IMG/VR virus record: IMGVR_UViG_3300033182_000980
Coordinates: 62,001-126,000 of that record
DNA: 64,000 nucleotides
Direction: 5' to 3' (one strand)
A program made the translations under genes and the position numbers. Within the stretch, counting starts at the first letter, position 1; each line of letters starts with the position of its first letter. Below the pieces are notes generated by a model, which did not search any database, was not told the origin of the DNA, and saw only the letters and a program-made list of their open reading frames with translations. This document shows, one piece after another, positions 5,345 to 46,220 of this stretch.

Positions 5345-5938
5345 ATGTATCTAAAGAGAGCATTACTTAACCTTGAGCGTAGGGTTGCTGATCTTGAAGC
5401 TGACCTTCAGCCTCAACTTGGTAAACCTGGTGGAGTCAAGCACACAACACAGCGTATTGACGAAGCCTTACCCGACGGGAGCCCGAAAGAAATCGAGCTG
5501 ATAGATACAGTCAATAAGGGTCAAGGGATCTCTAATCAAGACGCAAGGATTGTGTATCGCTTTGACGACTGTAATCCAGCTCTTGACGGAACGACTATGG
5601 TTAAGGGTTTTTGTGTCTCTTCTCATGGTCAGTTTAGAATGGACCAAAGAGGGATTACAGTTCGCAAGATCCAAGAGTTCTTCTTTAATCTGGAGAAGTA
5701 CCTAGAAAGGAATGAGACTAATCGGAGGACTTTCGACTTGCGAGACTCAATCAATAGAGGAATGGAAACCAAGTGGACAGATGAGCGTAGTAACAATCTC
5801 ACAGTAGTCTTTAGACTTGAGGGAGACAGTGCCAAGATCATCACTACTTATTACAAGAATAAGAAAGACCCGATCTTGACCGAGGAGAAAGACTACTCAC
5901 GCTTTATTCGACCTAGAGGTCGTAGACGAAGGCGTTAG
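5345..5938 (+). CDS. Putative BECR/DUF4258-like RNase-fold protein with a divergent coiled-coil leader
   Basis: N-terminal LLNLERRVADLEA resembles the leader; C-terminal SSHGQFRMDQRGIT...VVFRL...KIITTYY resembles the DUF4258 pattern. Confidence 0.45.
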   Translation: MYLKRALLNLERRVADLEADLQPQLGKPGGVKHTTQRIDEALPDGSPKEIELIDTVNKGQGISNQDARIVYRFDDCNPALDGTTMVKGFCVSSHGQFRMDQRGITVRKIQEFFFNLEKYLERNETNRRTFDLRDSINRGMETKWTDERSNNLTVVFRLEGDSAKIITTYYKNKKDPILTEEKDYSRFIRPRGRRRRR

Positions 5939-6342
5939 TAAGCACCTGCTATGTGTTCGATTTCTTCTTCGACCTTCATAGCAAGCATATACCAACGCTC
6001 TGCAAGGTCTTGGTAGTAGGGGTCTTTGCCTCTACTGAAAGAGGGCATCTTTTCAAGCTCACGCTCCATTTCTTGCATAGCCTTTAAGACTTTTTCTGCT
6101 GACCTACGAACAGGCGTAGAAGCTGTTCTCTGCTTGCTCTTGTACTCATTCGTGAGCCGATACTCTTTTACGAGAGCTTCATATTCTTTGTTCTGCGATG
6201 GGGTAAGACGATCTTGGTCTTCAAGGAGTTGAAGCTCATCTAACCTTGCTCTATCTTTTTTAGACATAGTGCGAGCTTGTCTCTCAAGGCGAGCAATACG
6301 ACCCTCAAGTTCACGAATTATTTCTGAAGCTGATCTTCTCAT
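5935..6342 (-). CDS. MRRSASE-leader protein 1 (unknown cargo)
   Basis: MRRSASEIIRELEGRIARLERQA; GGAGAA RBS. Confidence 0.85.
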   Translation of the reverse strand: MRRSASEIIRELEGRIARLERQARTMSKKDRARLDELQLLEDQDRLTPSQNKEYEALVKEYRLTNEYKSKQRTASTPVRRSAEKVLKAMQEMERELEKMPSFSRGKDPYYQDLAERWYMLAMKVEEEIEHIAGAY

Positions 6343-6386
6343 AGTTTGTTCTCCATTTGGTTAATATGACCACCAATGAAAAACCT

Positions 6387-6398
6387 ATAAAAGACCTA
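6387..6398 (-). promoter_or_regulatory. Motif A variant
   Basis: TAGGTCTTTTAT upstream of leader protein 1. Confidence 0.45.
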
Positions 6399-6401
6399 CA
6401 A

Positions 6402-6455
6402 ATAAAAAATGTCTCTTAAACACCCTCTGTGGCTTAGTGAGGGGTCTAAGAGACA
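6402..6455 (-). terminator. Intrinsic terminator downstream of the SSB-like gene
   Basis: Inverted repeat TGTCTCTTA (6410-6418)/TAAGAGACA (6447-6455) with inner CCCTC/GAGGG, followed by a T-run on the minus strand. Confidence 0.6.
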
Positions 6456-6528
6456 TAGAGCCTTTAGTTGAATCAAAGGCTATTGAGCGTATTCAACCAT
6501 GACTTAAGTCATGGGTCAAGGCTTTTTC

Positions 6529-7425: not shown

Positions 7426-9027
7426 TCACTTAATCTTTGGTCGGGTGTCGCATCTCTGCCTTAGAAGGTAAAGATTTGTCTCGTGTGTGTTCGCCATAGA
7501 CATGATAAAGTCGTCCATACCTAATGTAAGGCCACCCTGCTCTTTAAGCATATCATAAGCGTTCTTAAAGATGACCTGTAGGCCCTCTTCAATCAATAAA
7601 GCTCTGCGTATCGGGTCATTCATGCTGTGAGCTTCGGCTAGAGGTAAGAGGTGGTTAGCCATGAGCTGTGCTTGTTCAACAGCATTAACAGCCTCTACCC
7701 CATATGTGCCGACAATCTTTTCAGCCAGTGTGTCGATTTCTTCAATAAGAGATGTGTAAATCCTCTCCATCAGCTCATGATCACCGTAGAAGCTTGATCC
7801 TTTAACCTGCCAATGGCTCGTCCAGTGTGCAAAGTGAGCACCACGAAGAACAGCTAAGAGCATTTGAAGTATGGCGAGGTTATCTGTCCGATCACAGGTG
7901 CTCGCTCTTTTGTTGTATCTCATAAGTTCTTTCTTAGCGTTCATGGCTTCCCTTGCATCATAAAACACGATCATCTCCGAGTGATTACCAGCTATACGAT
8001 AGAAATCTTCTTTGCGACCAATGAGATCTCTACGAGCTTGAGCAATAGACACTACCTCAACATCTTTGAGCTTAACAGGCTTATCCCAAATGACCTCCTC
8101 AACAAAGCCCTTTTTAGGCTTGGTGCTGGTCTTGAACTTTAAAGCCACCATCTCCTTAGCTCTGCTTTTCTTACCCCCACTCATCTGAACGGAGTAGACA
8201 TCCCAACCCCACACACCAGAGATCGCATATACACCACCAGCACTAGGTGCGTCATCATCCATGATGTGATTAGGTCTAAGATAGCCGTCTGCGATGATGT
8301 CATCTACTCGGTTCGCATAGGTGTAGTGATAGAAGAAATCTTTAGAGAGGTTAATGTGGTAGTAATACTTGCTAAAAGCATTGGATCCGTACTCTTCAAG
8401 TTCTTCATCATCAAGCTCACCACCCTCGTGATAAATCAGTTTTAGATCACGCAAAGAGGCTTGTTTATCTATGTGTCTCTTAGCTGGAGCATCTCTCTCA
8501 TCTAGGGTGAACTCTCTCCAAGCATCTTGGGGGTCTTCTTCTAAGACAGCGTAAGATCCTTCAATCAGATCGAAGAACATTTCCATGTCCTCTCTATCGT
8601 ACCACTCGACCCGATCTAAGAAATCGTTGAGGTCTACTACGATAGCCGTCTCACCTTCGACATAGATGTTAATGGCATCAAACATCTCGGACAGAGACAT
8701 GAGGTAAGCTGGCTTACCCTCGTAAACGAACTCTAGCTCGAATGGGAGGGAATACCCTATAGAGCCTCGTTTGTGCTTCTTGTAGTATTTCTTACGATAG
8801 TCTTGGCGATTCTTTCTATAGTTGGGATCAGTTCTCATTTTCTTCCTATGCTTCTTTCTGTTTTTTCGTCTTTGGACTAGATTAGTATTTCTCTTGCGTA
8901 AGTTTTTTGTCCTAGTCCTCATACGCCTTCTGCGTTTGATCTTAGGATTAGTCCTACGCTTAGTGCCAGCCTGTAGCTCTTCAGCAAAGAGGTCATCTGC
9001 AAGTATTTCGGCTAAGAAATCACTCAT
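7426..9027 (-). CDS. Multidomain protein: basic N-region, ADP-ribosyltransferase-fold-like domain, Dps/ferritin-like C-terminal domain
   Basis: Start at 9027 (overlaps upstream stop). FYHYT....IIADGYLRP is ART-like; AHFAHWTSHWQVKGSSFYGDHELMERIY...EIDTLAEK matches the Dps ferroxidase motif. Confidence 0.65.
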   Translation of the reverse strand: MSDFLAEILADDLFAEELQAGTKRRTNPKIKRRRRMRTRTKNLRKRNTNLVQRRKNRKKHRKKMRTDPNYRKNRQDYRKKYYKKHKRGSIGYSLPFELEFVYEGKPAYLMSLSEMFDAINIYVEGETAIVVDLNDFLDRVEWYDREDMEMFFDLIEGSYAVLEEDPQDAWREFTLDERDAPAKRHIDKQASLRDLKLIYHEGGELDDEELEEYGSNAFSKYYYHINLSKDFFYHYTYANRVDDIIADGYLRPNHIMDDDAPSAGGVYAISGVWGWDVYSVQMSGGKKSRAKEMVALKFKTSTKPKKGFVEEVIWDKPVKLKDVEVVSIAQARRDLIGRKEDFYRIAGNHSEMIVFYDAREAMNAKKELMRYNKRASTCDRTDNLAILQMLLAVLRGAHFAHWTSHWQVKGSSFYGDHELMERIYTSLIEEIDTLAEKIVGTYGVEAVNAVEQAQLMANHLLPLAEAHSMNDPIRRALLIEEGLQVIFKNAYDMLKEQGGLTLGMDDFIMSMANTHETNLYLLRQRCDTRPKIK

Positions 9028-10276
9028 GGTCAGCCTTCTTTCTCCGTTTTTCGGCTCGTTGGTTCTTCTGTTTAATGGTAGAGACACCACCGCCTGGTCT
9101 ACGCTTGTACTTCTCAGGGTTCTTAGCATAGTTTTTCTTGTACTTCTTGTAAGTAGGGTTATGTTTCTTACGCTTGTAGAGTCTCTTCTGCTTCAGAAGA
9201 TTTCTACGATATTTAACCCGATACCTACGCTTGTACTTTTGAGACTGGCGTTTGGCTTGCCCCTTTTGTTTCCTCTGTCGCTTATTTCCTTTAGGTGGGC
9301 GATAGTTGTATCGGAACAAAGCGACTTTGATGAGGTCATCTCCGTCTATATCCCAATACTCGAAATCTTCAACAGAACCCATGACCCTACGCTTTAGGCC
9401 GGTTGAAGTGGATTGGTCTATATGAGGGTTTCCATACTGATCGCCTGGAATACCACTTGATCTCGGACGCTCATGGAGGGCTTTTCCATCGGGATGATCG
9501 TTTAATGCACTTGGGTCTTTCTTTGGACGATTCGCTCCACCTTGACCACTAGAGTCGGGAGGTGAGTTAATAACTCCTGGACCAACTCTTTGTTCGTCAC
9601 GACCTTCTGGATGTCCACTAGGTAAAGGAAGAACTCGATCTCTTTGAGGCTTACCGTCTTCATAATCTTCTCTTGATTTCTGTGGTGATGAAGTGTCGTT
9701 ATTGATTTGGTCTTGTCGGGTTTTATCGACCCATGTTTTGACACCTGCTAAGTCTTGTGCCGGTTGAGCCGCTGACTGTAGATAGCGAAGGGCTACCCTA
9801 CTAGCAGACGCTTTCTTCTTCTCTGTGATCTCTTTAGCTTCTTCACTGAAAGTCGGAGTATTAACAGGCTTCTTCCCACGATGTTTCGCTTCTTCACGCC
9901 TTTTCTTTTTGGCAAGCTCGGCTCGGTCTTCTTTAGACATTCCCCATGCCTTCTCTCGTGGCATACACTTGAGGGGTTTTTTGCCCCCACTTGTAACATC
10001 TGACCACTCTTTTTCACTAGATATGGCACATGGGCCAACAATGTCTCCTGGTTCATAGGTCTTGTCCTCTCCATCTTCTTTTTTGATCGTGTGTTTTACA
10101 GGTGTTATAGCAATCCAATCGCCCCATGTAGCACGATCATCGGGATCTCCACCACCATGTCCTGCAAACCAAGTACCTAACCCACCCTTACCAGTGTTCT
10201 TTTTTTTGGGGTCATCACGCTTTACGGACTCTAAATAGCGTTCAGCAACCTTTTCGATAAGACTTTTATTTTTCAT
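9020..10276 (-). CDS. Hypothetical basic multidomain protein with RVA-type motifs
   Basis: MKNKSLIEKVAERYLES; KGGLGTWF; SRVALRYLQSA; very K/R-rich C-terminus. Start inferred from GAGGT spacing. Confidence 0.75.
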   Translation of the reverse strand: MKNKSLIEKVAERYLESVKRDDPKKKNTGKGGLGTWFAGHGGGDPDDRATWGDWIAITPVKHTIKKEDGEDKTYEPGDIVGPCAISSEKEWSDVTSGGKKPLKCMPREKAWGMSKEDRAELAKKKRREEAKHRGKKPVNTPTFSEEAKEITEKKKASASRVALRYLQSAAQPAQDLAGVKTWVDKTRQDQINNDTSSPQKSREDYEDGKPQRDRVLPLPSGHPEGRDEQRVGPGVINSPPDSSGQGGANRPKKDPSALNDHPDGKALHERPRSSGIPGDQYGNPHIDQSTSTGLKRRVMGSVEDFEYWDIDGDDLIKVALFRYNYRPPKGNKRQRKQKGQAKRQSQKYKRRYRVKYRRNLLKQKRLYKRKKHNPTYKKYKKNYAKNPEKYKRRPGGGVSTIKQKNQRAEKRRKKADHE

Positions 10277-10287
10277 CGCCATATACC

Positions 10288-12224: not shown

Positions 12225-12228
12225 TAAC

Positions 12229-12799: not shown

Positions 12800-13308
12800 G
12801 CAAACGAGCTGAACGGATAAAAGAGAAGATCCCCATCCTCTCGGTATTAAGTGCCTATAACTATGATGTACATGGTCGGGATCATCAGCAACAGTTTAGA
12901 TGCGACCTACATGGTGATGGTTCGGATAACGCACCCTCGGCTCGTGTGTATCCAGAGACAAACACATGGTTCTGTTTCGCCTGTGGTAAAGTGCGAGACT
13001 CCATCGCTACGGTCATGGAGAAAGAGGGGTTAGACTTTGGTAAGGCTTGTACTGCCCTTGAACTCAAATATGGACTTGAGGTCTGGAAGTACGAGCCTAA
13101 GAAGGACATCTTTGAGGACACCTATGAAGACCCTACACGCAAGGAAATACTAGTGCGTAGGGTAGAGGGTCTATTAAACGAGAAAACCTCTAGGAGAGAG
13201 GATTATGAGGACACCTTACGCTATTGGGAGGTGTTCAATATGCTCTCCTCACTAGAGGACTCTAAGGTGCGTCAATGGGAGAAGCTATATAAGGCTTTAT
13301 CCTCTTAG
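12796..13308 (+). CDS. Stand-alone CHC2 zinc-finger protein (DnaG primase zinc-binding domain)
   Basis: FRCDLHGD...PSARVY...WFCFACG; ATGA overlap with the upstream gene; no TOPRIM domain. Confidence 0.85.
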   Translation: MSKRAERIKEKIPILSVLSAYNYDVHGRDHQQQFRCDLHGDGSDNAPSARVYPETNTWFCFACGKVRDSIATVMEKEGLDFGKACTALELKYGLEVWKYEPKKDIFEDTYEDPTRKEILVRRVEGLLNEKTSRREDYEDTLRYWEVFNMLSSLEDSKVRQWEKLYKALSS

Positions 13309-14981
13309 AAGCGACCACCGTCATCTTCTGGTGGGTTATACTTTAAGCCAAGATTTTTAGCGATGATCTCAATCGCTTCTGTGTTCTCGGCTAACATACG
13401 ACCTGCTTCGCCATAGACACCTCTAAGAACCTCATTAAACTGAGAGTCATTGAGCGTCCACATATCACGCTCAAGTTTAGCCTTAGTGGTCATAGGGTCT
13501 ACATTGAGGAGTTCTAAGATCACATCAATATCCAATGACCCCTTCTGATAAAGATTGAAGAGGGCATCGAATGTATCTTGGTTGTCTCTTAGCCCAAGTC
13601 GAGTGAAGCTAAGGGTAGGGTGTATTACAACCTCATCACCATCTTCATCTTCCTCAATGAAGCCCATGCGTCTACACATCGGTTTCAAGATGTTCTCCTC
13701 GACCATCTCTTGAAGAACCTCACGCATGAGCATATAGCGTGTGTTGATGACTTCTAGGTTGATCCTATCACCACTATAGCTTGACTCGCCCGAAAGCAGA
13801 GACTCGGTAACACCTAGACCAGCATACATTTGTCGGTCGGTCATGTCGTATTCACCCGATAGCTCAAGTAGACGAGAGTCTGCACCCATCTCCTCCCAAG
13901 AAACTTGGAAGTTAGCGATGATCGAGTAATCGGGGTCTTGGAGTGCAAGGTCAACTTGATCTCTTAACTCCTCAACATCAGCCGCGTCCATATCTTCTGC
14001 ATAAACGAGTCGGATAGGTGTCATGTGTCTTGAGGCGATTGAGGTTTGAGCCTGTCTTAACTTATCACGATACACCAAGATTCTGAGGCAACGCTCAAGC
14101 ATGGAGTGTCCACGAGGCTCATATTGAGATTTCTTACGAGCCATGTAGTAGACGAACGACCCTTGATCTGGATCGGTGTTGAGGTCAATGTTGCGTCCAT
14201 CTCGGATGGCTTCAACGACATCACCTGGCATTGAGTCTACTATCCTAAGAGCTGAAGGATCATTAACCGAAGCTCGTTCGACTACATCACGAGTCTTGCT
14301 GTCGGGGATGAGCTGGATGATCTTTTCGTTGGTGAAAGGAAAGCTCTCCATGTGGACTTGTTCGGGAGGGAGGATGCGAACACCAGTCCACCCTTTATAG
14401 TTCTTCTTGAGCCACTTGTAAGCTCGTTCATGGGAGTCCTCATATTCAGTCCACTCTGTGAAGGCAGACCCATCTTCTTTGAGAACATTCCGACCACTAT
14501 GAGTCACCTCTTGAGGCACATCTGGATTATTATCTTCACAGAAAACGAACACCTCACCGAGTAGGTTAAACTCATGTAGGATTTCTATAAGGCGGTGAAG
14601 TAGTCCGACACGCTTCGCCCACTTTTCACAGAACCTAAGTGCCTCATAAGCCATATCCCGATTACGAGCTTTGGGTAGACCTAATCTGATCTTAGAGAGG
14701 GGTAGCTCTGTATGTAGGTCTATCGCTTGACCTACGAAGGGGTCTGTTCGATAGAAGAACCTAAAATAGTTGCGTTGTTCGTCTTGGCTTTGGGGTAGCT
14801 CAAGGAAGTCAGTCGATAGCTCTGGTGAGTAGAAGTTCCCACCCGATCCCATCATAGAGCCACCTGTGGTCATAGCGACCTTGACTCTTGATTTCATCTC
14901 GGCAGGATTGAGCTTACGAGTGATCGCTTTTGATCGGGGTTTAATCTTCCCAACTGGTTTGGCTTCTAGTTCTTCGCTCAT
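13305..14981 (-). CDS. Phage portal protein
   Basis: 558 aa; RFFYRTDPFVGQAIDLHTELPLS, YEPRGHSMLERCLRIL and SYSG..INLEV resemble large-phage portal sequences. Confidence 0.7.
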   Translation of the reverse strand: MSEELEAKPVGKIKPRSKAITRKLNPAEMKSRVKVAMTTGGSMMGSGGNFYSPELSTDFLELPQSQDEQRNYFRFFYRTDPFVGQAIDLHTELPLSKIRLGLPKARNRDMAYEALRFCEKWAKRVGLLHRLIEILHEFNLLGEVFVFCEDNNPDVPQEVTHSGRNVLKEDGSAFTEWTEYEDSHERAYKWLKKNYKGWTGVRILPPEQVHMESFPFTNEKIIQLIPDSKTRDVVERASVNDPSALRIVDSMPGDVVEAIRDGRNIDLNTDPDQGSFVYYMARKKSQYEPRGHSMLERCLRILVYRDKLRQAQTSIASRHMTPIRLVYAEDMDAADVEELRDQVDLALQDPDYSIIANFQVSWEEMGADSRLLELSGEYDMTDRQMYAGLGVTESLLSGESSYSGDRINLEVINTRYMLMREVLQEMVEENILKPMCRRMGFIEEDEDGDEVVIHPTLSFTRLGLRDNQDTFDALFNLYQKGSLDIDVILELLNVDPMTTKAKLERDMWTLNDSQFNEVLRGVYGEAGRMLAENTEAIEIIAKNLGLKYNPPEDDGGRF

Positions 14982-15207: not shown

Positions 15208-15248
15208 ATTTTATACCCCCTCTGTTGTTAGGTGGGGATATAAAACAA

Positions 15249-15536
15249 CTATTGAGGTATATGATAACTATATGCTTCTGCCATTCGGATCATGCCGTCT
15301 ATGGTTGGATCATGGCTATTGGTATAAAACCTCAACCCCCCAAACTTTTCTTTGATCTGAACGACATAGAAGATGCCCGCATCTGGTGTCTGTATGAGGT
15401 GGCTCTGGATTTGATTGCATAAGGTATCGACCAATGGATACCAAGACTCGGACACTTCAAGATATGTCAGAGTCGGATCACCATATTCATCTGTGAACAA
15501 TGACTTCCACTTAGCGATCAACTCATCATGTGTCAT
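15249..15536 (-). CDS. Conserved phage hypothetical protein (QIKEKFGGLRFY family)
   Basis: GW-like SWYPLVDTL and QIKEKFGGLRFY motif common in phage proteins; ATG at 15536 overlaps the upstream stop. Confidence 0.7.
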   Translation of the reverse strand: MTHDELIAKWKSLFTDEYGDPTLTYLEVSESWYPLVDTLCNQIQSHLIQTPDAGIFYVVQIKEKFGGLRFYTNSHDPTIDGMIRMAEAYSYHIPQ

Positions 15537-16054: not shown

Positions 16055-16066
16055 TAGTTTATTTAT
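16055..16066 (+). promoter_or_regulatory. Motif A
   Basis: TAGTTTATTTAT upstream of 16106. Confidence 0.6.
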
Positions 16067-16105
16067 ACCTACTTCTTTGCAGTAGAATAAGCCGAAGGAG
16101 AGATA

Positions 16106-17827
16106 ATGAGAGACAATCAGATATACCTCTACAATACCACAGTAGATGAAGCACTAGAGATACTTGGGATGGAATCTCGTAGAGACACAGCCCTCATTAA
16201 CCATGACGAGTTTGAAGTTAAGCTCAATAAAAAAGGCGACCATGTTATGGTGACTCTGTTAAGGGGTCTTGGCGACATGGACATTGATGACGGCATTATT
16301 CAGATCAAGATTGATTTTCCAGGTAAGTACCGAGATATGGAGAGCATTGATCGTGTACGAGCCGTTCTTGCACTTAATCCAAACAGCGATTGGTGGAAGG
16401 GCATCGTAGAGGAGCTTGAGGAGGGCTATCCTTTATCATGGAAAGTCGAAGAAATCTTGATTGAAACTGAAGAGCGTATTGAGAATCCAGATGAGGATGT
16501 ACTTGCTATGCTCGACCAAGCGATTGCAAGCAATCCTCGTTTTAGACTCCTTCAATCTTTCAAACAGCAAGTTTTATCTGGTCGTGAACTTTCAGAGCGA
16601 CAGATGGAGATCCTTGAGGAGAACTTAGGTTCAAGTGTTCCCTCAAACACCAATCAGATCGCTCGGATTAATGAAGCTCTCGCACTTGATCCTAGAAATC
16701 GTTTCGTTAGCCAGCTCAAGCAAAAAGCCGAGAATGGCATCACTTTGTCCGAGAGACAGATGAATGTGGTGGAAGAGATCATCGGAAGTCAGTCATCTCC
16801 TGCCGCTAAGATGCTCGCTGACCTTAAAGCCAATGCTTATCTTGAGCGTGAGGACTTTATGCTTATCAATAAAGGTCAGCGTAGGGGCATTGACTCACTC
16901 AATGATGAGGAGCGTAAGCGTTTGCGTCATCTCATCTACCGTAATGAGCGTAAGCTCGACAACACTTACTCCAAAGATGAAGTCAGAAGGCTTCTAAAGA
17001 AAGGAACAGCTATGCGTAGACTCGCTAGTGAAGTTATTCGTGATCTTGAGATGAGGATTGCTCGTCTTGAGGCAAACCTCAATCGTACTGCAAGCATGAC
17101 TCGTGAAGCCGCTGGAGATCCTCAGCTCGCTGGAGTTCGCTCAAGCACAGCTTACCATGAGGGTCGCTCAATGGCAGAGGCTACCTCTTGTATGCTTTAT
17201 CTCATCGGTGAGTCAGAGAATAAGAGCAAGTTCTACGAGATGGTCATCAACGGTTCTACCGTAGAAATCCTTTATGGTCGTCTCGGTTCTACCGGTCGTA
17301 GAGCAGATAAGTCATTCATGGACTCTTATGATGCACAGGCTTTCTTTGTTAAACAGCTCAAGTCTAAGCTCAAGAAAGGTTATGTCTCTGCATTCGCACA
17401 GCGTGGCGAGCATCGTAAGAGCGGTCCTCTCTATGGAACTTACCCAATCGGACTTACCTCTACTCCTGGACCTTGGCAGAACCAAGACATCGCTTATGAC
17501 CAAGCGATGATTACAGATACAGTTTCTGTTGTTCGTGCGGCGATTGCTTCATTCCAAGAGGACGGTATTGTTGATGAGCGAGCAATTGCTATGCTTATGT
17601 CTACACAGCGTTCACTCGGATTAAACAGGGATCAACTCTCACAAGAGTGTGCTAAAGAGATCGGTCTTGCTCTTGATCGTATCCAAGGTACAGGTCGTGC
17701 GGGTCGTCAGCCTGTTGAAGTTCGTACTCGTACTGCCATCAAGGGTCTACAGAAACTCATGCGTAAACTTGAGGGTGCTATGACTGGTGGTCGTAGAAGA
17801 GCTTTTTATCAAAAAAAAAATTGGTAA
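16106..17827 (+). CDS. Repeat-containing protein with internal MRRLASE leader and WGR domain
   Basis: Tandem ~50-aa repeats (NP..F..S.KQ....G..LSERQM..IEE); MRRLASEVIRDLEMRIARLE from 17012; NKSKFYEM...VEILYGRLGSTG...KLKKGY is WGR-like. Confidence 0.75.
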   Translation: MRDNQIYLYNTTVDEALEILGMESRRDTALINHDEFEVKLNKKGDHVMVTLLRGLGDMDIDDGIIQIKIDFPGKYRDMESIDRVRAVLALNPNSDWWKGIVEELEEGYPLSWKVEEILIETEERIENPDEDVLAMLDQAIASNPRFRLLQSFKQQVLSGRELSERQMEILEENLGSSVPSNTNQIARINEALALDPRNRFVSQLKQKAENGITLSERQMNVVEEIIGSQSSPAAKMLADLKANAYLEREDFMLINKGQRRGIDSLNDEERKRLRHLIYRNERKLDNTYSKDEVRRLLKKGTAMRRLASEVIRDLEMRIARLEANLNRTASMTREAAGDPQLAGVRSSTAYHEGRSMAEATSCMLYLIGESENKSKFYEMVINGSTVEILYGRLGSTGRRADKSFMDSYDAQAFFVKQLKSKLKKGYVSAFAQRGEHRKSGPLYGTYPIGLTSTPGPWQNQDIAYDQAMITDTVSVVRAAIASFQEDGIVDERAIAMLMSTQRSLGLNRDQLSQECAKEIGLALDRIQGTGRAGRQPVEVRTRTAIKGLQKLMRKLEGAMTGGRRRAFYQKKNW

Positions 17828-18482: not shown

Positions 18483-18904
18483 TGATGTATCGTAGAGATG
18501 GGTTGATCTTTATGACCCTAAATGATCCTCATTGGAATAACCCTAAGATCGCTAAGATCCTTCCTTATGAGAGTACAAATTGGGGTGCGTTCTCTGACCT
18601 AGTAGGGACACCTGTAGAGCGTTTAATCCCCGAAGTCTCGCATGATATACTCGACCAAGCAATGAGAGGGTTCACAACCCCTCTGATGAACCAAAACCTT
18701 AGAGAGCCTAGAGGCTGTCTAAAACTCCTTGATGTACCCAAAGATTGTGACGAAAAAGACCACTGTCTTTCGTATAACAAAGACCGATGTATCTTGGGGC
18801 ATCGTAAAATGCCAGAGTGCTTTTCACCACTCGCCACTCAATCTCTTAGACCTCTTGTTCTAGCTTGGCTAGAAGGATTCCACATAATCCGTGAAAGGGC
18901 ATGA
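18482..18904 (+). CDS. Hypothetical Cys-containing protein
   Basis: Translationally coupled (TAATG); C..C..C...C pattern. Confidence 0.7.
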   Translation: MMYRRDGLIFMTLNDPHWNNPKIAKILPYESTNWGAFSDLVGTPVERLIPEVSHDILDQAMRGFTTPLMNQNLREPRGCLKLLDVPKDCDEKDHCLSYNKDRCILGHRKMPECFSPLATQSLRPLVLAWLEGFHIIRERA

Positions 18905-19554
18905 TTATGAAATACTTTAACCACCCACCCACAATGCGTAGAGTTTATGATGACGAAGAAGCTCAAACTCAACATCGGAAAAACGCACAAGCCGATTTCT
19001 ATGGTGAGATTACGGTAAGCGACAACCACATCTACCTCTATCAAGGCATCTCTCCCAAGGCTGTTATGGAGATGGGCATCGCTATCAAGTCCATTGGTCA
19101 ACAGATCATCAACATGGTCACTGATCTTGGACTCTCCCAAGCACCTGCTATCCACCTTCACATTAACTCTGGTGGTGGGTGTGCCTTTAGTGGTCTTGCT
19201 GGAGCGAGCCATATCTTAGACTCGGACATCCCTGTGTTCACCTATGTAGAGGGTTCAGCGGCTTCTGCGGCCACGATCATGTCTTGTGTCGGGGCTAAAC
19301 GCTTCATCACAGAGCATAGCTTCATGCTCATTCACCAGATCAGCACTGGTGTATGGGGTACATACGAGAACCTAAACGATGAGAAAGAGTCTATGGACTC
19401 GCTCATGGAGATGTTGGAGTCAATCTACCTCAAGAACACCAAGATGAAGAAGAAGCAACTCAAAGAGCTTCTAAAGCGTGATCTCTGGATGAACCCTAAG
19501 AAGTGTCTTGAGCTTGGATTGGTAGACGAGATCATCAAGTACGAGCGTGTTTAA
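18901..19554 (+). CDS. clpP: ClpP-like serine protease
   Basis: IHLHINSGGG, EGSAASAATIM (catalytic Ser), SFMLIHQ (His), RDLWMNPKKCLELGLVDEI. Confidence 0.85.
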   Translation: MIMKYFNHPPTMRRVYDDEEAQTQHRKNAQADFYGEITVSDNHIYLYQGISPKAVMEMGIAIKSIGQQIINMVTDLGLSQAPAIHLHINSGGGCAFSGLAGASHILDSDIPVFTYVEGSAASAATIMSCVGAKRFITEHSFMLIHQISTGVWGTYENLNDEKESMDSLMEMLESIYLKNTKMKKKQLKELLKRDLWMNPKKCLELGLVDEIIKYERV

Positions 19555-24340: not shown

Positions 24341-24440
24341 ATAATAAATACCACAAGCATAAGAGTCGCTTGGTTCTTCTTTGAGAGATCTCAAGTGCAA
24401 CTATGAGAAAAAACCGATTGAAAAAATGAAAGGAAAAGGC

Positions 24441-32286: not shown

Positions 32287-33375
32287 ATGGCTAAAGGCTA
32301 TTATGTTTATCGTCAGTTCAACAAGAGGACAGGCGAGTATTACATCGGCAAGGGTACTTACTCTGATCGAGATCCCGATGGGAGTAAGTACAAAGGCTCT
32401 GGTATCTTGCTCTTGCGTAAAATGAACGCTCACCCAAATGACTTTGAGAAAGAAATCTTAAAGGATTTCGAGAGCGAAGAGGACGCTTACGCTTATGAGG
32501 CAGAGCTTGTGGGTGAGAGGTATATCGGTGGTGCAGACCATGACCCACTTTGTTTGAACATGAACAGTGGAGGCATGGGTTCGTCCTCTAATGCTTTGAA
32601 GCATTATTACTCTAACCCTATCGTGAAGATGGAGATGAGTGAGAGGATGAAAACCTTATGGGAAGATGAGGATTATCGGGAGAAAGTTCTAGCTTCAAGG
32701 GAGGGTGAAGCTAGAGAGAGGTGGCACGAGTCTCATCAAAAGGCTCTTAAAGACCCAGAGGTGAGAGCGAGAATAAAGGAGGGGGCAAACAATCCTCACA
32801 AAAAGAAATCAGTGCGAGAGGCACAGATTAAAATGAAACCGATCAATGTCGAGAAAGACGGAGTGGAGATTGAGATCCCTAGAGGAGAGTTAGCCGATTA
32901 CTTTAGGTTGGGTTGGTCGCTTTGCTCTAAGGGTGTTGTGAACATTCACCATATGGACATTGGGATATATAGCTGTGGTCAGCATGATGTGGTGAAGCAT
33001 CTTGTGTTGGAGCATGGATTCAAGTTTGGAACTCACTATGACTTAGAGCGGGTTAACTATGATGTGATCTCTAAGTTAGCGGGTGTTCGGGAGGCCAAGT
33101 CTAAGGGTCAGATGGGGAATTGGTCTTTGAAGCCTGTGAAGCTGATTAACTTAGAGGGTGAGGTAGAGCTTGTGCCCCGTGATGTTTACTTGGACAAGTT
33201 AGAGGAGGGCTATACCTTTAAGAGTGCGAATGTGATAATAAGAAACCACACGCTCAAGCAGACTTGCGTCTTAGGCAAGGGTAGAGCGAGGAGGGTCTTG
33301 CTAGAAAGGGGAGGTTGGGAGCTTGGTAGCAAGCGAGGTTATGAGGCAGTGAGTACCAAGTCTCTTGATTTGTAG
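32287..33375 (+). CDS. Free-standing GIY-YIG (Seg-like) homing endonuclease
   Basis: YYVY...TGEYYIGKG, YKGSG, AYAYEAEL, CLN; located downstream of nrdB. Confidence 0.8.
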   Translation: MAKGYYVYRQFNKRTGEYYIGKGTYSDRDPDGSKYKGSGILLLRKMNAHPNDFEKEILKDFESEEDAYAYEAELVGERYIGGADHDPLCLNMNSGGMGSSSNALKHYYSNPIVKMEMSERMKTLWEDEDYREKVLASREGEARERWHESHQKALKDPEVRARIKEGANNPHKKKSVREAQIKMKPINVEKDGVEIEIPRGELADYFRLGWSLCSKGVVNIHHMDIGIYSCGQHDVVKHLVLEHGFKFGTHYDLERVNYDVISKLAGVREAKSKGQMGNWSLKPVKLINLEGEVELVPRDVYLDKLEEGYTFKSANVIIRNHTLKQTCVLGKGRARRVLLERGGWELGSKRGYEAVSTKSLDL

Positions 33376-33384
33376 TTTATTTAT
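33373..33384 (+). promoter_or_regulatory. Motif A
   Basis: TAGTTTATTTAT upstream of leader protein 2; TAG is the GIY-YIG stop. Confidence 0.65.
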
Positions 33385-33434
33385 TGACTCTCCATTGGTG
33401 ATCTTTAACCCTTAACCGACAATGGAGAACTATT

Positions 33435-33779
33435 ATGAGAAGATCAGCAAGCGAAGTCTTAAGAAACTTAGAAATGCGTATCGCAAGACTTGAGAAGCAA
33501 GCAGGATTCACTGTAGGGCAAGAAGTACCTTATACACTAAGAACCCTTAAAAAAGTGATGTCAGAGGGTTATGGATTCAAAGTGATAAGTGTAGGGGGGG
33601 GTTTGAGTGATACTCTTGAATACAGTTTAACCTCCGAGCAAGTGGCTAAGATCAGTTCTAGGGGGAAGGTTGATGTTATGCTAAAAAACATTCAACAAGA
33701 GCTAAAGTTCTCGATAGAGCCTAACCTAAAGAGGAAGGGTCGTAAAAACTTCATTGTCCTCACAGAAAACCCTGCTTAA
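33435..33779 (+). CDS. MRRSASE-leader protein 2
   Basis: MRRSASEVLRNLEMRIARLEKQA. Confidence 0.85.
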   Translation: MRRSASEVLRNLEMRIARLEKQAGFTVGQEVPYTLRTLKKVMSEGYGFKVISVGGGLSDTLEYSLTSEQVAKISSRGKVDVMLKNIQQELKFSIEPNLKRKGRKNFIVLTENPA

Positions 33780-33860: not shown

Positions 33861-33872
33861 TAGTTTATTTAT
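33861..33872 (+). promoter_or_regulatory. Motif A
   Basis: TAGTTTATTTAT upstream of leader protein 3. Confidence 0.65.
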
Positions 33873-39197: not shown

Positions 39198-41294
39198 TTG
39201 AGAAAGGTTTTCCTCGTGTTTTATGTTGCAAAAGTGTTGGGGCAGATTTTTGCTAATCCCCCTTATTATATTTTAAGATGTATCGTAGCTTCGGAGGCAG
39301 ATACAAAACCTATTGTGGTTAAAGGGAAGATCGCCGGTCCTGTCTCAAGAGGTCAAGTGTTCACCTTTCAAGGTAAAGAAACGCTCGATAAGCGTAATGG
39401 AAAAAAGAACCTAGACATCGTTCGCAATCCGATTAACCCTAAGTATTTAAAAGGTTCTGCTCTTTATAGCTGGTCGGATTGGTCAGACCCTCTCATGCAA
39501 GAGTCTATTGAGGTGATCTCAAGCCTCTCCGAAGCTGGTGTGCCTTTGAATGTCATCAACTCCATTTGGAATGATGTTCAAATGTCTCCCGACTCTATCG
39601 CCTCGAACCCTTGGTCTTTGGTCTACAAAGGTGTCTCGTTTCAAGGTGCAGATGAGATCGCTAAGACGCTACTGAAAAAAGACTTTGACCCCGAAAATGA
39701 AGGTCGGGTCGAAGCGTCTATCTTTTGGTCTATGCTTCAAGGTGTGTATCAAGGTCATTGCCACCTAGACACTAATACCGTGTTCAAAGATACTGCTGTC
39801 CTTACAGGCTTGACGAACCCGAAAGAAATCGGTCAAGTCATCAAGTCGATGAAAGAAGCAAAGCCTCCTCGCATCGTGGTCGATAAGATCCAACAAGACC
39901 CCTCTATTGGACTCTATTTGCCCTCTTATTACAAAATGGAGGTAGAGGTTGCCGAAGAAATAAAGTCGCCTCTAAGGGTCAATCCCATGCTTGAAACAAT
40001 GAGTATTGATGACATTAAGTCATACTCACGATACCCATTGACCAATACACAGCTCAAGGCTATCCAGCAAGGTCTTACAGAGCCATTCTCAATCGTGACA
40101 GGATTACCAGGAACAGGTAAGACAACTATCCTCAATACACTGTGTAAAATCCTACTTGATCGTAAAGAGAGTATCTTGCTCATTGCCCCGACAGGTATCG
40201 CCGCAAAACGAGCAAGTGCCTTAACCAATATGGATGCTTTTACAGTCCATAGAGCGTTCGGTGCTGGTCAACCTATGGACGATAAGACAGACAAGTCCGA
40301 CTATGAAGGTGTGAAGAAAGACGAAGAAAGTGGAGTTAAGGGCATTGGGAACAGCAATGACCCAAGCCGAGAGATTTGGAGGCATAACCCTCAAAACCCT
40401 CGCCCCGAATCTGTAGTCATTATAGATGAGTCCTCTATGATTGATCTTCACCTCATGTGGCGAGTGATGAAAGGTATATCGCCTAAGTGCCGAGTCATCA
40501 TGGTAGGGGATATAGCACAGCTACCCCCTGTCGGTGCTGGCTTTGTGTTGTCCGAGCTTATTGAGTCAAATGCAGTACCGAGAGAACACCTTACCGAAAT
40601 CTTTAGGCAAGGCGAGGGGAGTGGTGTTACGATTGCCGCTCACAAGATCCATGCTGGTGAAGTACCTCAACACAACAAGGATTATCAGTTTATTGATCGC
40701 TATACATCACAAGACATTCTTGACGAGATTGTGAACCGATGTAAAGAGCTTCACATGGACCAAGTAGATTTCCATGTAGTCAGCCCCACGCATCATGGCA
40801 AGGTCGGAGTCACGAACCTTAACCGAGAGCTAAGGTCGGCTTTGAACCCCGATATAGGTGGTGCTTTCATCCGAGTAGGCAACGACTCTATCCGAGTAGG
40901 TGATCGTGTGATGATTACCAAGAATGAGTATGATCTTAATGTCTATAATGGAGATATAGGTCGTATTAGGTCGATTGATAAAACAAGCGTGAGCGTACTT
41001 ATAAAGGGTGTAAAGGATCAGATCGTAGACATCCCATCTGACCAAGTAGGGAAGCTCTTGAGGCTCGCTTATGCGACAACTGTCCATAAGAGCCAAGGTC
41101 TTGAATATGACACCATCTTAATGCCTATGACCACAGATCATAGCTCAAACCTATTACAACGCTCTTTACTCTATACAGCAGTCACGAGAGCGAAAGATAA
41201 GGCTGTCTTGGTAGGGGATAAAGACGCTGTGGCTATTTGCGTTGGTAATGCGTCTAGTGGGCTTAGATACTCTAGGTTGAGGTATCGCTTTTAG
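39198..41294 (+). CDS. recD2: RecD2-like superfamily 1 helicase
   Basis: TGLPGTGKT, IIDESSM, VGDIAQLPPVG, YATTVHKSQG, LLYTAVTRAK; true start may be GTG at 39216. Confidence 0.9.
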   Translation: MRKVFLVFYVAKVLGQIFANPPYYILRCIVASEADTKPIVVKGKIAGPVSRGQVFTFQGKETLDKRNGKKNLDIVRNPINPKYLKGSALYSWSDWSDPLMQESIEVISSLSEAGVPLNVINSIWNDVQMSPDSIASNPWSLVYKGVSFQGADEIAKTLLKKDFDPENEGRVEASIFWSMLQGVYQGHCHLDTNTVFKDTAVLTGLTNPKEIGQVIKSMKEAKPPRIVVDKIQQDPSIGLYLPSYYKMEVEVAEEIKSPLRVNPMLETMSIDDIKSYSRYPLTNTQLKAIQQGLTEPFSIVTGLPGTGKTTILNTLCKILLDRKESILLIAPTGIAAKRASALTNMDAFTVHRAFGAGQPMDDKTDKSDYEGVKKDEESGVKGIGNSNDPSREIWRHNPQNPRPESVVIIDESSMIDLHLMWRVMKGISPKCRVIMVGDIAQLPPVGAGFVLSELIESNAVPREHLTEIFRQGEGSGVTIAAHKIHAGEVPQHNKDYQFIDRYTSQDILDEIVNRCKELHMDQVDFHVVSPTHHGKVGVTNLNRELRSALNPDIGGAFIRVGNDSIRVGDRVMITKNEYDLNVYNGDIGRIRSIDKTSVSVLIKGVKDQIVDIPSDQVGKLLRLAYATTVHKSQGLEYDTILMPMTTDHSSNLLQRSLLYTAVTRAKDKAVLVGDKDAVAICVGNASSGLRYSRLRYRF

Positions 41295-42484
41295 ACGAAG
41301 ATAGTATCTTCTCTATCTGCACCCGTTGAAATGATCGACACTGGACAAACCTTCTCGCTTATATAACCAACATAAGCCTTTAGGTTCGCATGGAGGAATG
41401 AGTAGTCTTGAACACCCGCTGTATTATCCCAGCCGTCAAAGACTTCCATGCCCCCCTTCAATCCAATCTTTACCTCGCTAAACCCATCGAGGACATCAAC
41501 CTTGGTGAGAGCGAGTGAGGTAAAGCCATTTAGGATTTGAGCTTCCCGAAGCATTGGTAGCGAGTTCCAACCACAGCGTCTAGCCCGACCTGTGACTACT
41601 CCAAACTCACCCCCTTGAGTCCTTAGACGCTCACCAAGTTCACCTGTGTCCTCTAACCCAAATGGTCCAGCACCAACTCGTGTGCAATAGGCTTTCACTA
41701 CCCCAATGATTTCTGCATCACGAGGTAAGGCACAGCCAATACCTGCACTAATGCCTCCTGCAATCGTAGTAGAACTTGTTACGAATGGGTATGTGCCATG
41801 TGAGATGTCGAGGAATGTACCTTGAGCACCCTCAATGATGATCTTATTTGCTCCACCATTCATGGCTTCATGGAGCTTCACAGACAGGTTGTCATAGATG
41901 AATGGTATCCAGTTATTTCTCCACTTGTTCAACTTGGACATGATTTGCTCCTGTACAAGAGGAGCTGATAAACCGCCATGAGCCATAGCGATGAGCTTGG
42001 TTTTCTCTGCCCATGTCTTTGGGTCGAGTAGATCACCGACTCTTAAACCAATGCGTCTGGCTTTATCTTCATAGCAGACACCGATACCGTTGCGAGTTGT
42101 TCCGATACGATTGTCAGATTTCTCTTCACGAGCTGTATCTACCTCAATGTGGATAGGGAGGATGAGATGAGCACGATGGTCGATGAGAACCCTCTTACTT
42201 GCTTCCTCATAACCAACCATTTTACAGAGCATATCGAACTCACCTTGGAGAACATCAAGGTTGATCGCCATACCAGCTCCGAGTACACCCTTTGCTCCTC
42301 TTAGGACACCAGAGGGGAGGAGTCGGAGCTTGTATGTCTCCCCACCAAAGATGATGGTATGCCCAGCGTTGCTTCCCCCTTGAAAACGGATGCAGTAGTC
42401 AGCGTTGCCCGACAAGAAATCAACGATCTTGCCTTTACCCTCATCACCCCATTGAGCACCGATTACAGCTATGACTTGAGTCAT
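41291..42484 (-). CDS. purA: Adenylosuccinate synthetase
   Basis: QWGDEGKGK, RFQGGSNAGHT, EGAQG, GTYPFVTSS, GEFGVVTGRARRCGW, LTKVDVLDG. Confidence 0.95.
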   Translation of the reverse strand: MTQVIAVIGAQWGDEGKGKIVDFLSGNADYCIRFQGGSNAGHTIIFGGETYKLRLLPSGVLRGAKGVLGAGMAINLDVLQGEFDMLCKMVGYEEASKRVLIDHRAHLILPIHIEVDTAREEKSDNRIGTTRNGIGVCYEDKARRIGLRVGDLLDPKTWAEKTKLIAMAHGGLSAPLVQEQIMSKLNKWRNNWIPFIYDNLSVKLHEAMNGGANKIIIEGAQGTFLDISHGTYPFVTSSTTIAGGISAGIGCALPRDAEIIGVVKAYCTRVGAGPFGLEDTGELGERLRTQGGEFGVVTGRARRCGWNSLPMLREAQILNGFTSLALTKVDVLDGFSEVKIGLKGGMEVFDGWDNTAGVQDYSFLHANLKAYVGYISEKVCPVSIISTGADREDTIFV

Positions 42485-42503
42485 TTGTATCTCCATTAGT
42501 TAA

Positions 42504-42515: not shown

Positions 42516-42557
42516 TGATACCAAGCTATAAACAAGAACCTTGAAAGGAAATGCTTT

Positions 42558-43772: not shown

Positions 43773-43784
43773 TAGTTTGTTTAT
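43773..43784 (+). promoter_or_regulatory. Motif A
   Basis: TAGTTTGTTTAT upstream of leader protein 4. Confidence 0.65.
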
Positions 43785-43835
43785 ACCTACCAATAAGTGA
43801 TCATTAAACCCTTAACCTTGAATGGAGAACCGATT

Positions 43836-44306
43836 ATGAGAAGATCAGCTTCAGAAATCATCAGTGACCTTGAAAATCGTATTGCACGACTTGAAGGTAA
43901 GACAGCCAACCACAATGCGAACATTAAGATCTCAACTTCCTGGTATACAGGCAGTCCAAGAGATGATGTGAGAATGATGACCTTGACTGATATAGTTGAT
44001 GAAGCTCAATCTGATTTTGAGTCTCAACAAAATCAACTTAAGGAAGATATTGAGCTAGGAGACGCTGAACGAGGTACTAACTTTAATGTCTACATTGACA
44101 TTGGATATGGTCAACTTCGCATTAACTCTGGTGCTGATGATGGAACTACTAACTATCAAGCTGGATGTGTTTGTTGTCTTTGGTCTGCTTTTGTAGCGGC
44201 AGGTCTTGCCGAGATGTCCTATCCTAATGCTTCAAAAAAACTAGCTTCCATGCTAAAAACTCGGTTAAGAGGTTTCTCGGTATCTGTGAATATAGAGAAG
44301 GCTTAA
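43836..44306 (+). CDS. MRRSASE-leader protein 4
   Basis: MRRSASEIISDLENRIARLEGKTA; GGAGAA RBS places the start at 43836. Confidence 0.85.
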   Translation: MRRSASEIISDLENRIARLEGKTANHNANIKISTSWYTGSPRDDVRMMTLTDIVDEAQSDFESQQNQLKEDIELGDAERGTNFNVYIDIGYGQLRINSGADDGTTNYQAGCVCCLWSAFVAAGLAEMSYPNASKKLASMLKTRLRGFSVSVNIEKA

Positions 44307-45277
44307 TCTTCGACTCGTTCAAGATAAGAGATAGCCATTTCCTTAGCTCCATTCGACCCCATAGTCTGCATGACTCGCTCTTTGAGCGTAAGCTCTGACC
44401 AACCCGATGTGGCTACAGCTTTCATCTTGTCCACTATGTCCTCCATGCGTTGCTTATCTTCCTTCTCACGCACCGTTTCCTCAATCTTGAATACCTCATT
44501 GGCATCTCGTACAGGAACATCGTGTCGGACGAAGTTAAGCGAATCTTTGGTGGCTTGAACCTCGATCACACAAGGTCTACGGTCTAAGTCATCAAGGTGT
44601 AAAGAGCCTCTAGTTAATGACCCGACATTAACTACCCTCGCTCCATTTAAGAGTGTGGAGATCCCTTGGTCTTTATGCCAATGACCAAAGAACCAACCGT
44701 CAACCTCTGTGTTGTCGTTGAGGAAGTCATATCCGATTATATCCTCGTTCTCGAACATAGAGCCAGTCTTACCTTGCCGAGCCAACAGGTGGCAAGCGAC
44801 TAACAGATAATCCTCGTCTTTCTTCTTTATGCTCTTGAGCCGATCAAAGTCATAGATGACCCCATGATAAGGCACACCCACCACCCGAACCTTGACTCCA
44901 TCTTTCTCAAGGTTGATTTCTACATCATCGCCAAACTGCTTGAACACCCCCGATGAGAATAGGACACCTAGAGGTTGTTCGGGTAAGTAGTCTATATTGC
45001 CATATTTCACATCGTGGTTGCCGACTAGACCATAAGTGGGGCAAGGGTAATGCTCATGTGCTTCACACGCTCTACGGACTAAACTATGGCTGTTCTTGGT
45101 GGGTGATTTAACATCAAAGAAGTCTCCCCCATCAAGCACAGCGTCAATCCCTTTATCTTTGGCGAGATCACCAATCCACTTGAGCTTATTGACCACATCG
45201 TCAGTCCAGTTTCCTGTGCGTCTGCGAGGCGTTTTATCACCCATGTGGACATCGGTTCTCCATAGTAGCTTTATCAT
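44303..45277 (-). CDS. SbcD/Mre11-like metallophosphoesterase (DNA repair exonuclease)
   Basis: TDVHMG, GGDFFD, GNHD, GHWH, NVGSLTR. Confidence 0.8.
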   Translation of the reverse strand: MIKLLWRTDVHMGDKTPRRRTGNWTDDVVNKLKWIGDLAKDKGIDAVLDGGDFFDVKSPTKNSHSLVRRACEAHEHYPCPTYGLVGNHDVKYGNIDYLPEQPLGVLFSSGVFKQFGDDVEINLEKDGVKVRVVGVPYHGVIYDFDRLKSIKKKDEDYLLVACHLLARQGKTGSMFENEDIIGYDFLNDNTEVDGWFFGHWHKDQGISTLLNGARVVNVGSLTRGSLHLDDLDRRPCVIEVQATKDSLNFVRHDVPVRDANEVFKIEETVREKEDKQRMEDIVDKMKAVATSGWSELTLKERVMQTMGSNGAKEMAISYLERVED

Positions 45278-45293
45278 AGGTTCAACCTCTCAA

Positions 45294-45305
45294 TAGTTTA
45301 TTTAT
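45294..45305 (+). promoter_or_regulatory. Motif A
   Basis: TAGTTTATTTAT upstream of leader protein 5. Confidence 0.65.
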
Positions 45306-45341
45306 CACTATACTTATATGATCAAACTAAGGAGAACTAAC

Positions 45342-46220
45342 ATGAGAAGATCAGCTAGTGAGATGATTAGAGATCTTGAGCGTAGGGTCGCTCGTCTCGA
45401 AAGACAGGCTAAAAAAGAACCACAGTGGATTACTTGGGCTTTAGAGGTTTTGGTGGAGAGTCGTGAAACTCAAGCCAAAAGCAGAGATGATCTTGAAGAG
45501 AGAAGAAACGGTCAAGTATGGGAATACTATCAAGGTCGTGATGATGTGATCTTGGTTTCTTCTGATGCAGATCGGAGTGATTACATCATTTACGAGAGTG
45601 ATGACGCTAAGATCGCTTTGAACAACGAGATCATGGAGGACATTCTTGAAAATAAGCCTTTAGAACAAATCATTCGGCATATGCCCTGGACAAAAGACAT
45701 TCTTTTAAGCACACTCAGTTTGCGTTATGGAGATCTTCAGATGTGGGCTTCCGAATGGGCAGAGGCTACTGTTGAAGGTTTAGATGATGACGAGCTTATT
45801 GAGAGGGCTGGTATGGAAGATGAGAAAGCAGAGTATGAAGAAGAAAGGGATTACTACGAGAAAAGAATGGATCCAGAAGTAGACGGTAAAATTAATCCTC
45901 TTTATTCGGACAACGCAGAAGTTATGGTCTTTGACTATAATAATATGCTTAACGACCTACCCGAAAATGCCAGAACTAAGTTGGTGGCAGAAGCAGAAGA
46001 AGAGATTAGTACGGCTCTTAAACAGTACCCTTATGAGTATCTTACAGAAGAAATGGGTTGGAGTGAGGGTCAAGTTATTCAAGCATTTGGTTCTCCCGAC
46101 AAAGACGAAATCGAAAGCATCATTGATCAGTTAGGTGCTTCCGAGAGAGAGTTTCAGTATCTCGCACCTAGTGGGAAAAGGCTTAGGACTAAACTCAACT
46201 ATGTGATTGAAGAGATCTAA
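45342..46220 (+). CDS. MRRSASE-leader protein 5 (highly acidic cargo)
   Basis: MRRSASEMIRDLERRVARLERQA; start 45342 by RBS. Confidence 0.85.
   Translation: MRRSASEMIRDLERRVARLERQAKKEPQWITWALEVLVESRETQAKSRDDLEERRNGQVWEYYQGRDDVILVSSDADRSDYIIYESDDAKIALNNEIMEDILENKPLEQIIRHMPWTKDILLSTLSLRYGDLQMWASEWAEATVEGLDDDELIERAGMEDEKAEYEEERDYYEKRMDPEVDGKINPLYSDNAEVMVFDYNNMLNDLPENARTKLVAEAEEEISTALKQYPYEYLTEEMGWSEGQVIQAFGSPDKDEIESIIDQLGASEREFQYLAPSGKRLRTKLNYVIEEI

Follow-up and report, generated by a model that had tools for sequence, protein, structure and literature searches.

The internal proteins of T-even phages share only a capsid-targeting sequence, occur in more than 30 variants, and are encoded in hyperplastic loci with repeated regulatory, PeSL-like elements (PMC3012670, PMC2839356). 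PeSL (promoter-early stem-loop) elements are promoter-bearing repeats upstream of orphan genes in T4-type phages, and they bound insertions, deletions and replacements between close T4-type relatives (PMC2839356). Head propeptides are also known from giant phages, the phiKZ-like ones and SPN3US, where some are 20 to 24 residues long and are cut after Glu by the prohead protease (PMC10052503). Here we describe a leader cassette found in 64,000 nucleotides of virus record IMGVR_UViG_3300033182_000980 (positions 62,001 to 126,000 of 375,691 bp; this whole stretch is the window referred to below), in which a promoter motif, an untranslated region (UTR) and a 23-residue N-terminal leader precede otherwise dissimilar proteins, hereafter the cargoes.

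Similar to the T4 capsid-targeting sequence, the leader is a short portable N-terminal peptide that is the sole common feature of unrelated small proteins, and its genes also lie in fast-changing loci with repeated regulatory flanks. The T4 sequence has about 10 residues, whereas the leader has 23 and is zipper-like. Other key differences are that the protease here is ClpP-like and that of T4 is of the gp21 type, that the cassettes occur genome-wide in comparison to two loci in T4, and that about 1000 protein clusters are involved in comparison to the more than 30 T-even variants. The seven window proteins matched none of the internal-protein families in PHROG or Pfam. The cassette resembles PeSL elements in having a promoter-bearing module in front of orphan genes and in the repeat-bounded insertions, deletions and replacements between relatives, while it differs in that the module reaches into the coding region and adds a protein tag, in that there is no conserved terminator stem-loop, and in that the promoter motif is of the structural-operon type, the PeSL promoter being sigma-70-like and early. 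Because no sequence relation was found, the protease family and the promoter type differ and a conserved stem-loop is lacking, the leader system falls outside both the T4 capsid-targeting and the PeSL families. The leader has A-S-E at residues 5 to 7 and ends in L-E, which is a likeness to the SPN3US propeptides; those propeptides, however, are not one shared sequence, and the gp21-type protease cuts at A-X-E, while no gp21-type protease is encoded here and the head protease is ClpP-like. The heptad pattern, the predicted helix and the best sequence matches in the PDB recall GCN4 and SYNZIP zippers, from which the leader differs in having only about three heptads, always at the extreme N-terminus. 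On our best reading, the system would work like a T4 capsid-targeting tag carried on PeSL-like shuffling cassettes, a known kind of system in a new form.

A six-frame scan of the window identified N-terminal leader copies beginning at 6342 (minus strand), 33435, 33923, 43836 and 45342, with the consensus MRRSASExxRxLExR[IV]ARLE for these five genes, and a sixth copy that is internal and in frame at 17012 within the open reading frame (ORF) 16106-17827, bearing out all six copies and positions given in an initial annotation of this DNA. The divergent copy that it had placed at 5345 is also present, the N-terminus of that ORF resembling the second leader half only (E 0.007). The DNA string ATGAGAAGATCAGC, said there to be identical in five copies, was found at exactly five window sites, with one further site at two mismatches; for up to two mismatches about 1.0 site is expected, and six sites were reached in 0 of 100 shuffles. 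Beyond residue 22, the window cargoes showed no detectable similarity, every BLASTP cross-match between cargo regions having E >= 0.5, in agreement with the claim that the cargoes are unrelated. The features that carry the leader or its half are the following:

5291..5938, plus strand: half-leader gene with an exact promoter motif at 5291-5302; its cargo has a DUF4258 domain
6273..6398, minus strand: 5' module of cassette 1, comprising the promoter variant TAGGTCTTTTAT at 6387-6398, the UTR (with CATTGGTGGTC and the ribosome-binding site AATGGAGAA) and leader codons 1-23
5935..6342, minus strand: leader protein of 135 amino acids, comprising the leader, a first module common to proteins P0094 and P0193, a degenerate second leader near residues 78-98, and a second module
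16055..17827, plus strand: first gene of the head operon, with the promoter motif at 16055-16066 and an ORF of 573 amino acids
17012-17080, plus strand: complete internal leader of the 573-amino-acid ORF, in frame and followed by a WGR domain
33373..33779, plus strand: cassette 2, with the motif at 33373-33384, the UTR at 33385-33434, the leader at 33435-33503 and an ORF of 114 amino acids
33861..34249, plus strand: cassette 3, in tandem with cassette 2, with the motif at 33861-33872, the UTR and a leader ORF of 108 amino acids from 33923
43773..44306, plus strand: cassette 4, with the motif at 43773-43784, the UTR and a leader ORF of 156 amino acids from 43836
45294..46220, plus strand: cassette 5, with the motif at 45294-45305, a shorter UTR and a leader ORF of 292 amino acids from 45342

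To determine the spread of the leader, a profile of 32 columns built from six leaders was searched against 1.84 billion representative proteins at E <= 0.001, and it matched 996 protein clusters (counted at 50% identity). Among the 150 listed clusters, from which positions were read, the match lay nearly always at residues 1 to 24 of proteins of about 50 to 400 amino acids. The global consensus was MRRSASE[IV]IRNLExR[IV]ARLE[KR]Q[AS], followed by wholly different sequences. At the DNA level, the leader pattern was found in 85 matching stretches of viral contigs and had no match in 185,579 cellular species genomes. Among GenBank phages (50,697 records), tblastn gave no match for the leader or for two leader proteins and megablast of 20 kb of the window found nothing, and the 41 kb around the portal gene of LR745208.1, the closest deposited genome, contained neither the leader nor the promoter motif. 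The leader contigs that were traced came from marine metagenomes (Tara and other ENA assemblies) and from viral contigs of up to 376 kb. The loci fetched for closer study (numbered with the prefix L below) gave 197 leader matches, 91 of them non-redundant and 89 of these starting at ATG, and the 79 complete leader proteins represented 64 clusters of cargo, the median length being 145 amino acids. Leader strings were not found in the literature searched. The system is real, much larger than the initial annotation had seen, and apparently undescribed.

The promoter motif TAGTTTNTTTAT lies 36 to 51 nt 5' of four window leader genes and a two-mismatch variant lies 44 nt 5' of the fifth, as the motif or variant reported by the initial annotation; a check for constant pairing in the fetched loci found the motif 34 to 55 nt upstream of the leader in 70 of 90 cases, mostly at 48 to 50 nt. 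With at most one mismatch, there are 17 window sites in comparison to 1.3 expected, and most of them stand in front of genes that lack the leader, which makes the motif a general promoter-like phage signal and not a private part of the cassette. At this threshold it is found ahead of the portal operon, of the operon that extends from ORF 16106 as far as the protease, of the gene following the protease, and of a tail-fibre-like gene of 2084 amino acids with an Mtd_N domain, and an exact copy precedes the decoration and capsid operon (L012). No copy of the motif, even at two mismatches, stands before the window genes for the clamp loader, the large subunit of ribonucleotide reductase, SNF2, UvrD, RecD2, the PurZ-like protein and superoxide dismutase.

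The stretch from the motif to the ATG is a conserved UTR of about 50 nt; the consensus reads CATAAGTGATCTCTTTAACCTTAACCAAATGGAGAA, then about 5 nt, then ATGAGAAGATCAGC, and the shared UTR string CATTGGTG(A/G)TC was recovered in three window UTRs as had been claimed. When GTGATCTCNTTAACC was located with up to two mismatches, the leader came next at 43 of the 63 sites, plus a few that are variants or are cut by locus ends, and the rest look like chance matches within coding sequence. The UTR, unlike the promoter motif, is specific to leader genes, and motif, UTR and leader act as a single unit. Over 80 modules, RNAalifold found no consensus RNA structure in the UTR; individual hairpins are present in some module copies, and no Rfam family matched in the window. 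The invariant GTGATC of the UTR (for example at 33393-33404), which we take to be complementary to the GAUCAC of the bacterial 16S rRNA 3' end, sits upstream, not downstream, of the true Shine-Dalgarno sequence. Pairing of UGAUCU in the UTR with AGAUCA of codons 3-4 was also considered and was rejected, there being no covariation when codon 4 is TCT. Several motif transcripts open with hairpins in which the ribosome-binding site is paired to a complementary stretch upstream of it, at 5298-5362 and at 6326-6400 on the minus strand (z = -5.96 and -3.33 when folded), with similar ones upstream of 15207, 12183 and 31240; in the gene at 5291..5938, a strong hairpin sequesters the ribosome-binding site. 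These hairpins suggest translational control and are not common to all cassettes.

Within the leader, Ser6 is encoded by TCN in about 41 copies and by AGY in about 32, and Arg15 and Arg18 use both AGR and CGN codons; since both codon families are used at these three positions, the leader is selected as a peptide. Codons 2 to 4 are almost fixed as AGA AGA TCA, in a set of which part was retrieved with that same pattern. AlphaFold2 models of two leader proteins, based on orthologue alignments, consisted of a lone lower-confidence helix at residues 5 to 22, a short linker and a globular cargo, which was mostly helical in the 292-amino-acid protein and a small alpha/beta fold in the 114-amino-acid protein (mean predicted local distance difference test scores of 86.5 and 67.8, respectively). 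The confident model of the protein from 45342 had no fold match in the PDB at E below 1. In the PDB, the leader profile comes closest in sequence to zippers of the GCN4 type, SYNZIP, CREB and Jun (E 0.002 to 0.1). The heptad a/d positions are occupied by I9, L12, I16 and L19, and by our own reading of the sequence these residues, with E13 and E20 in e positions and R15 in a g position, would fit a short parallel zipper. The motif [RK]TA[SGN] is concentrated at residues 20 to 29 (26 of 241 leader proteins) and could be a second recognition or cleavage site; it lies just past the leader, as at 17081-17100, and resembles the RRSAS of the leader start.

The cargoes are about 60 to 430 amino acids long. 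Those with known domains carry WGR or DUF4258 in the window and JmjC/cupin in the fetched loci, the latter being the only domain found by Pfam in ten long leader proteins of these loci, and no Pfam domain was found in 70 longer leader proteins from the global search. The JmjC/cupin-8 hydroxylase domain (L008:2050-2958, E 3e-20) is a rare recognizable enzyme-fold cargo. The proposal that the module converts any gene was overstated, because nearly all cargoes belong to no known family. Cargo orthologues are 54% to 73% identical in comparison to 90% to 98% for neighbouring helicase, phosphoesterase and protease genes, and among the orthologues of the 45342 protein the leader is retained while cargo identity drops to 49%. 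The window and L061 are homologous, at about 90%, from an upstream endonuclease gene through the promoter and UTR and along the leader; the homology is lost at 33504 (leader codon 23) and returns at 34264. Within this gap the window carries one cargo and a second complete cassette, and L061 a single different cargo. In L062, a complete cassette of about 500 bp, flanked by two motif copies, lies between the protease gene and the next gene, where the window has one motif copy only. At one junction downstream of the capsid gene, L045 has a leader cassette, L012 has a gene lacking the leader and L051 has neither; L080 and L094 have leader cassettes at other junctions. Swaps at leader codon 23 and cassettes gained or lost between motif copies agree with the expectation that cargoes vary between relatives, and with the view of the initial annotation that promoter, UTR and leader form a portable module of about 130 bp set on unrelated cargoes. 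In addition, in at least ten independent proteins made up of several modules, R[IV]ARLE[KR]Q[AS] is all that is left of the leader between two modules, and P0180 and P0193 link the 45342 cargo to other modules. A role of the module in recombination is directly supported by the breakpoints and fits any protein-level reading.

One leader protein belongs to the head operon. Two further genes of the window are needed to place it:

13305..14981, minus strand: portal protein, whose operon is preceded by a one-mismatch motif at 15240-15251
18901..19554, plus strand: ClpP-like head maturation protease, downstream of and co-oriented with ORF 16106-17827

The protease matches head-maturation protease families (phrog_94; PF00574 in L004 and L094) and neighbours the portal gene in a typical head operon. 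The portal protein is 72% identical to that of LR745208.1 (an uncultured 485-kb phage), 37% to that of Tunturiibacter phage Tunturi_5 and 27% to that of Bacillus phage G, and the major capsid gene, which is on the window's own contig (L012), is 39% identical to phage G gp27. In many relatives, the leader with its WGR domain is a separate gene of 262 to 281 amino acids; in the window a 404-amino-acid part is fused to it in frame, with the internal ATG and a Shine-Dalgarno-like AAAGGA kept. The leader-WGR part is directly upstream of genes for a 105-amino-acid protein, a 140-amino-acid protein and the ClpP protease in the window, L062 and L094. The full order in L094 is the 404-amino-acid gene, leader-WGR, the 105- and 140-amino-acid genes, the ClpP protease, a leader gene, an 88-amino-acid gene, the portal, a leader gene, a 177-amino-acid gene and a leader gene. 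This gene order in relatives makes one leader protein a fixed member of the head operon; further leader cassettes are often found within head or capsid modules. Directly upstream of the decoration and capsid operon, a 513-amino-acid protein with a very basic N-terminus (L012:6073-7614) is a candidate scaffold and a candidate partner of the leader; neither leader nor half-leader was found in this protein.

Because the leader copies are nearly identical, all tagged proteins would be brought to one common partner, and docking of diverse cargoes to one partner is the most likely function of the leader. In the mechanism that we favour, a clade of uncultured marine jumbo phages would use a self-contained expression-and-tagging cassette, consisting of the structural-gene promoter motif, the UTR of about 50 nt with its strong ribosome-binding site, and the 23-residue leader, a three-heptad leucine-zipper-like helix on a flexible linker that would serve as the docking tag. 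The likeliest partner would be the assembling prohead, where the tag would zipper onto a head-operon protein that has a leader itself or onto the scaffold, so that the cargoes would end up in the particle as internal or ejected proteins; the second leader half, ARLE-[KR]-Q-[AS], may double as a processing site. The packaging into virions put forward by the initial annotation has circumstantial support from the leader protein fixed in the head operon, the cassettes within head modules and the tag-like build of the proteins. Docking to the head, packaging and cleavage are the steps that we infer, and we give docking of the cargoes to the prohead and their packaging as internal proteins slightly less than even chances. 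With the conserved 5' module and the repeated motif as recombination handles, cargoes could be swapped quickly and cassettes gained or lost. A more far-reaching version, possible and rather doubtful, is an integron-like gene-capture and cargo-loading system, in which any coding sequence recombined behind codon 23 would take on the timing of structural genes, be strongly translated and acquire a prohead-loading zipper, giving a pool of about 1000 interchangeable injected effectors, some made as cleavable multi-cargo proteins.

Several points weigh against loading into the head. Neither the leader nor its half was found in the capsid, portal, protease or decoration proteins; replication and nucleotide-metabolism genes surround many of the cassettes; one cargo in two is strongly acidic; and the head-maturation protease is ClpP-like. 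The motif also precedes a homing endonuclease gene and, with one mismatch, the genes of the ribonucleotide reductase small subunit and a 2H-phosphoesterase-like protein, so it may not be strictly late; the description of the cassette genes as late-expressed is plausible in view of the motif before the capsid, portal and protease operons and its absence before replication genes, and is weakened by the copies before the endonuclease and reductase genes. In addition, a three-heptad zipper could equally serve dimerization or docking elsewhere. Cargo charge and hydrophobicity did not discriminate between the hypotheses.

The strongest alternative, which we still consider unlikely, is that the leader is a general zipper tag unrelated to the capsid that dimerizes the cargoes or docks them onto a cytoplasmic hub (such as a chaperone, a regulator, a phage factory or a host target), so that the cargoes act inside the infected cell as takeover or anti-defence proteins. 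The heptads permit g-e' salt bridges between R15 and E20, homodimeric zippers are the closest sequences in the PDB, and the cassettes among replication and metabolism genes, the fast evolution of cargoes without known family and the structural proteins without a leader are all in line with such a role. It leaves unexplained, however, the promoter motif shared with the capsid, portal and protease operons and the fixed leader-WGR protein in the head operon, and a plain dimerization domain need not start at residue 1, as 89 of 91 leaders (about 98%) do, nor stay nearly invariant across about 1000 families.

It is considerably less probable that the cassette is mainly a nucleic-acid element of the PeSL type, for translation control and recombination, with the peptide as a tolerated by-product or minor feature. 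The conservation of the UTR at the nucleotide level and its tie to the leader, the near-fixed codons 2 to 4 against the variable later Arg codons (in the partly pattern-selected set), and the insertion, deletion and swap breakpoints at the promoter motif and the leader end would all be expected of such an element, yet the peptide is kept over 23 residues in spite of synonymous and six-fold codon changes, the UTR is missing from internal in-frame copies and from half-leaders, and neither a consensus RNA structure nor an Rfam match was obtained. Less probable again is a tag for degradation or processing only, by which the phage ClpP-like protease or a host protease would time cargo activity without packaging. 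The ClpP-family protease encoded nearby, the half-leaders retained at module junctions, and the small residues and [RK]TA[SGN] concentrated directly past the leader could be explained in this way, but the protease sits beside the portal gene in a typical head operon and matches head-maturation families, and to our knowledge N-terminal tags recognized by Clp are not usually 23-residue zippers. That the leader genes are ordinary paralogues of one family, with a common N-terminus and upstream DNA and C-terminal parts diverged beyond recognition, is very improbable, given cargoes of such different length, the differing architectures of the two modelled cargoes, homology between relatives that ends exactly at codon 23, and cargoes in unrelated known families (WGR, JmjC/cupin, DUF4258). 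A leader peptide of a ribosomally synthesized and post-translationally modified peptide or a bacteriocin was rejected, the cargoes being folded proteins of 60 to 430 amino acids and the neighbours phage replication and head genes.

Some other features of the window were observed. Besides the genes above, it encodes ribonucleotide reductase, the UvrD and RecD2 helicases, an adenylosuccinate-synthetase/PurZ-like gene and superoxide dismutase; the adenylosuccinate synthetase homologue (41291-42496, minus strand) matches a PHROG annotated as PurZ type, and the ribonucleotide reductase large subunit (24381-27101) contains an intein with a LAGLIDADG endonuclease domain. A GMP reductase/IMPDH-like gene at 2804-5286 is split: its N-terminal part enters a Hint domain and ends at 3670, next comes a free-standing homing endonuclease of the NUMOD3/DUF559 type (3690-4667) that has a promoter motif of its own, and the C-terminal part resumes at 4657-5286. 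The arrangement has the appearance of an intein that an endonuclease gene has invaded or split. Two ORFs on the minus strand (7426-9129 and 9020-10291) have long protamine-like stretches rich in Lys and Arg, and one of these proteins ends with a Dps/ferritin-like DNA-binding domain; homologues lie directly upstream of the protease operon in L004, and these may be DNA-condensing head proteins. Two giant ORFs occupy 49760-57025 (2421 amino acids) and 57084-63338 (2084 amino acids), the second opening with the Mtd_N (major tropism determinant N-terminal) domain behind its promoter motif, and no sign of a reverse transcriptase was noted in the window.

The breakpoints are direct evidence of the way in which these phages, which are abundant, uncultured phages of the ocean, exchange orphan genes. 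If the leader is a loading tag, sequence alone would mark about 1000 orphan protein families as candidate injected effectors, for which anti-defence or host-takeover roles would be a natural guess. It would also be a second independent case of the T4 capsid-targeting principle, with another protease family and a zipper mechanism, and would provide a compact 23-residue tag for filling large capsids with proteins. Even with a partner outside the capsid, a near-invariant tag and UTR on about 1000 families would amount to an undescribed regulon and interaction hub.

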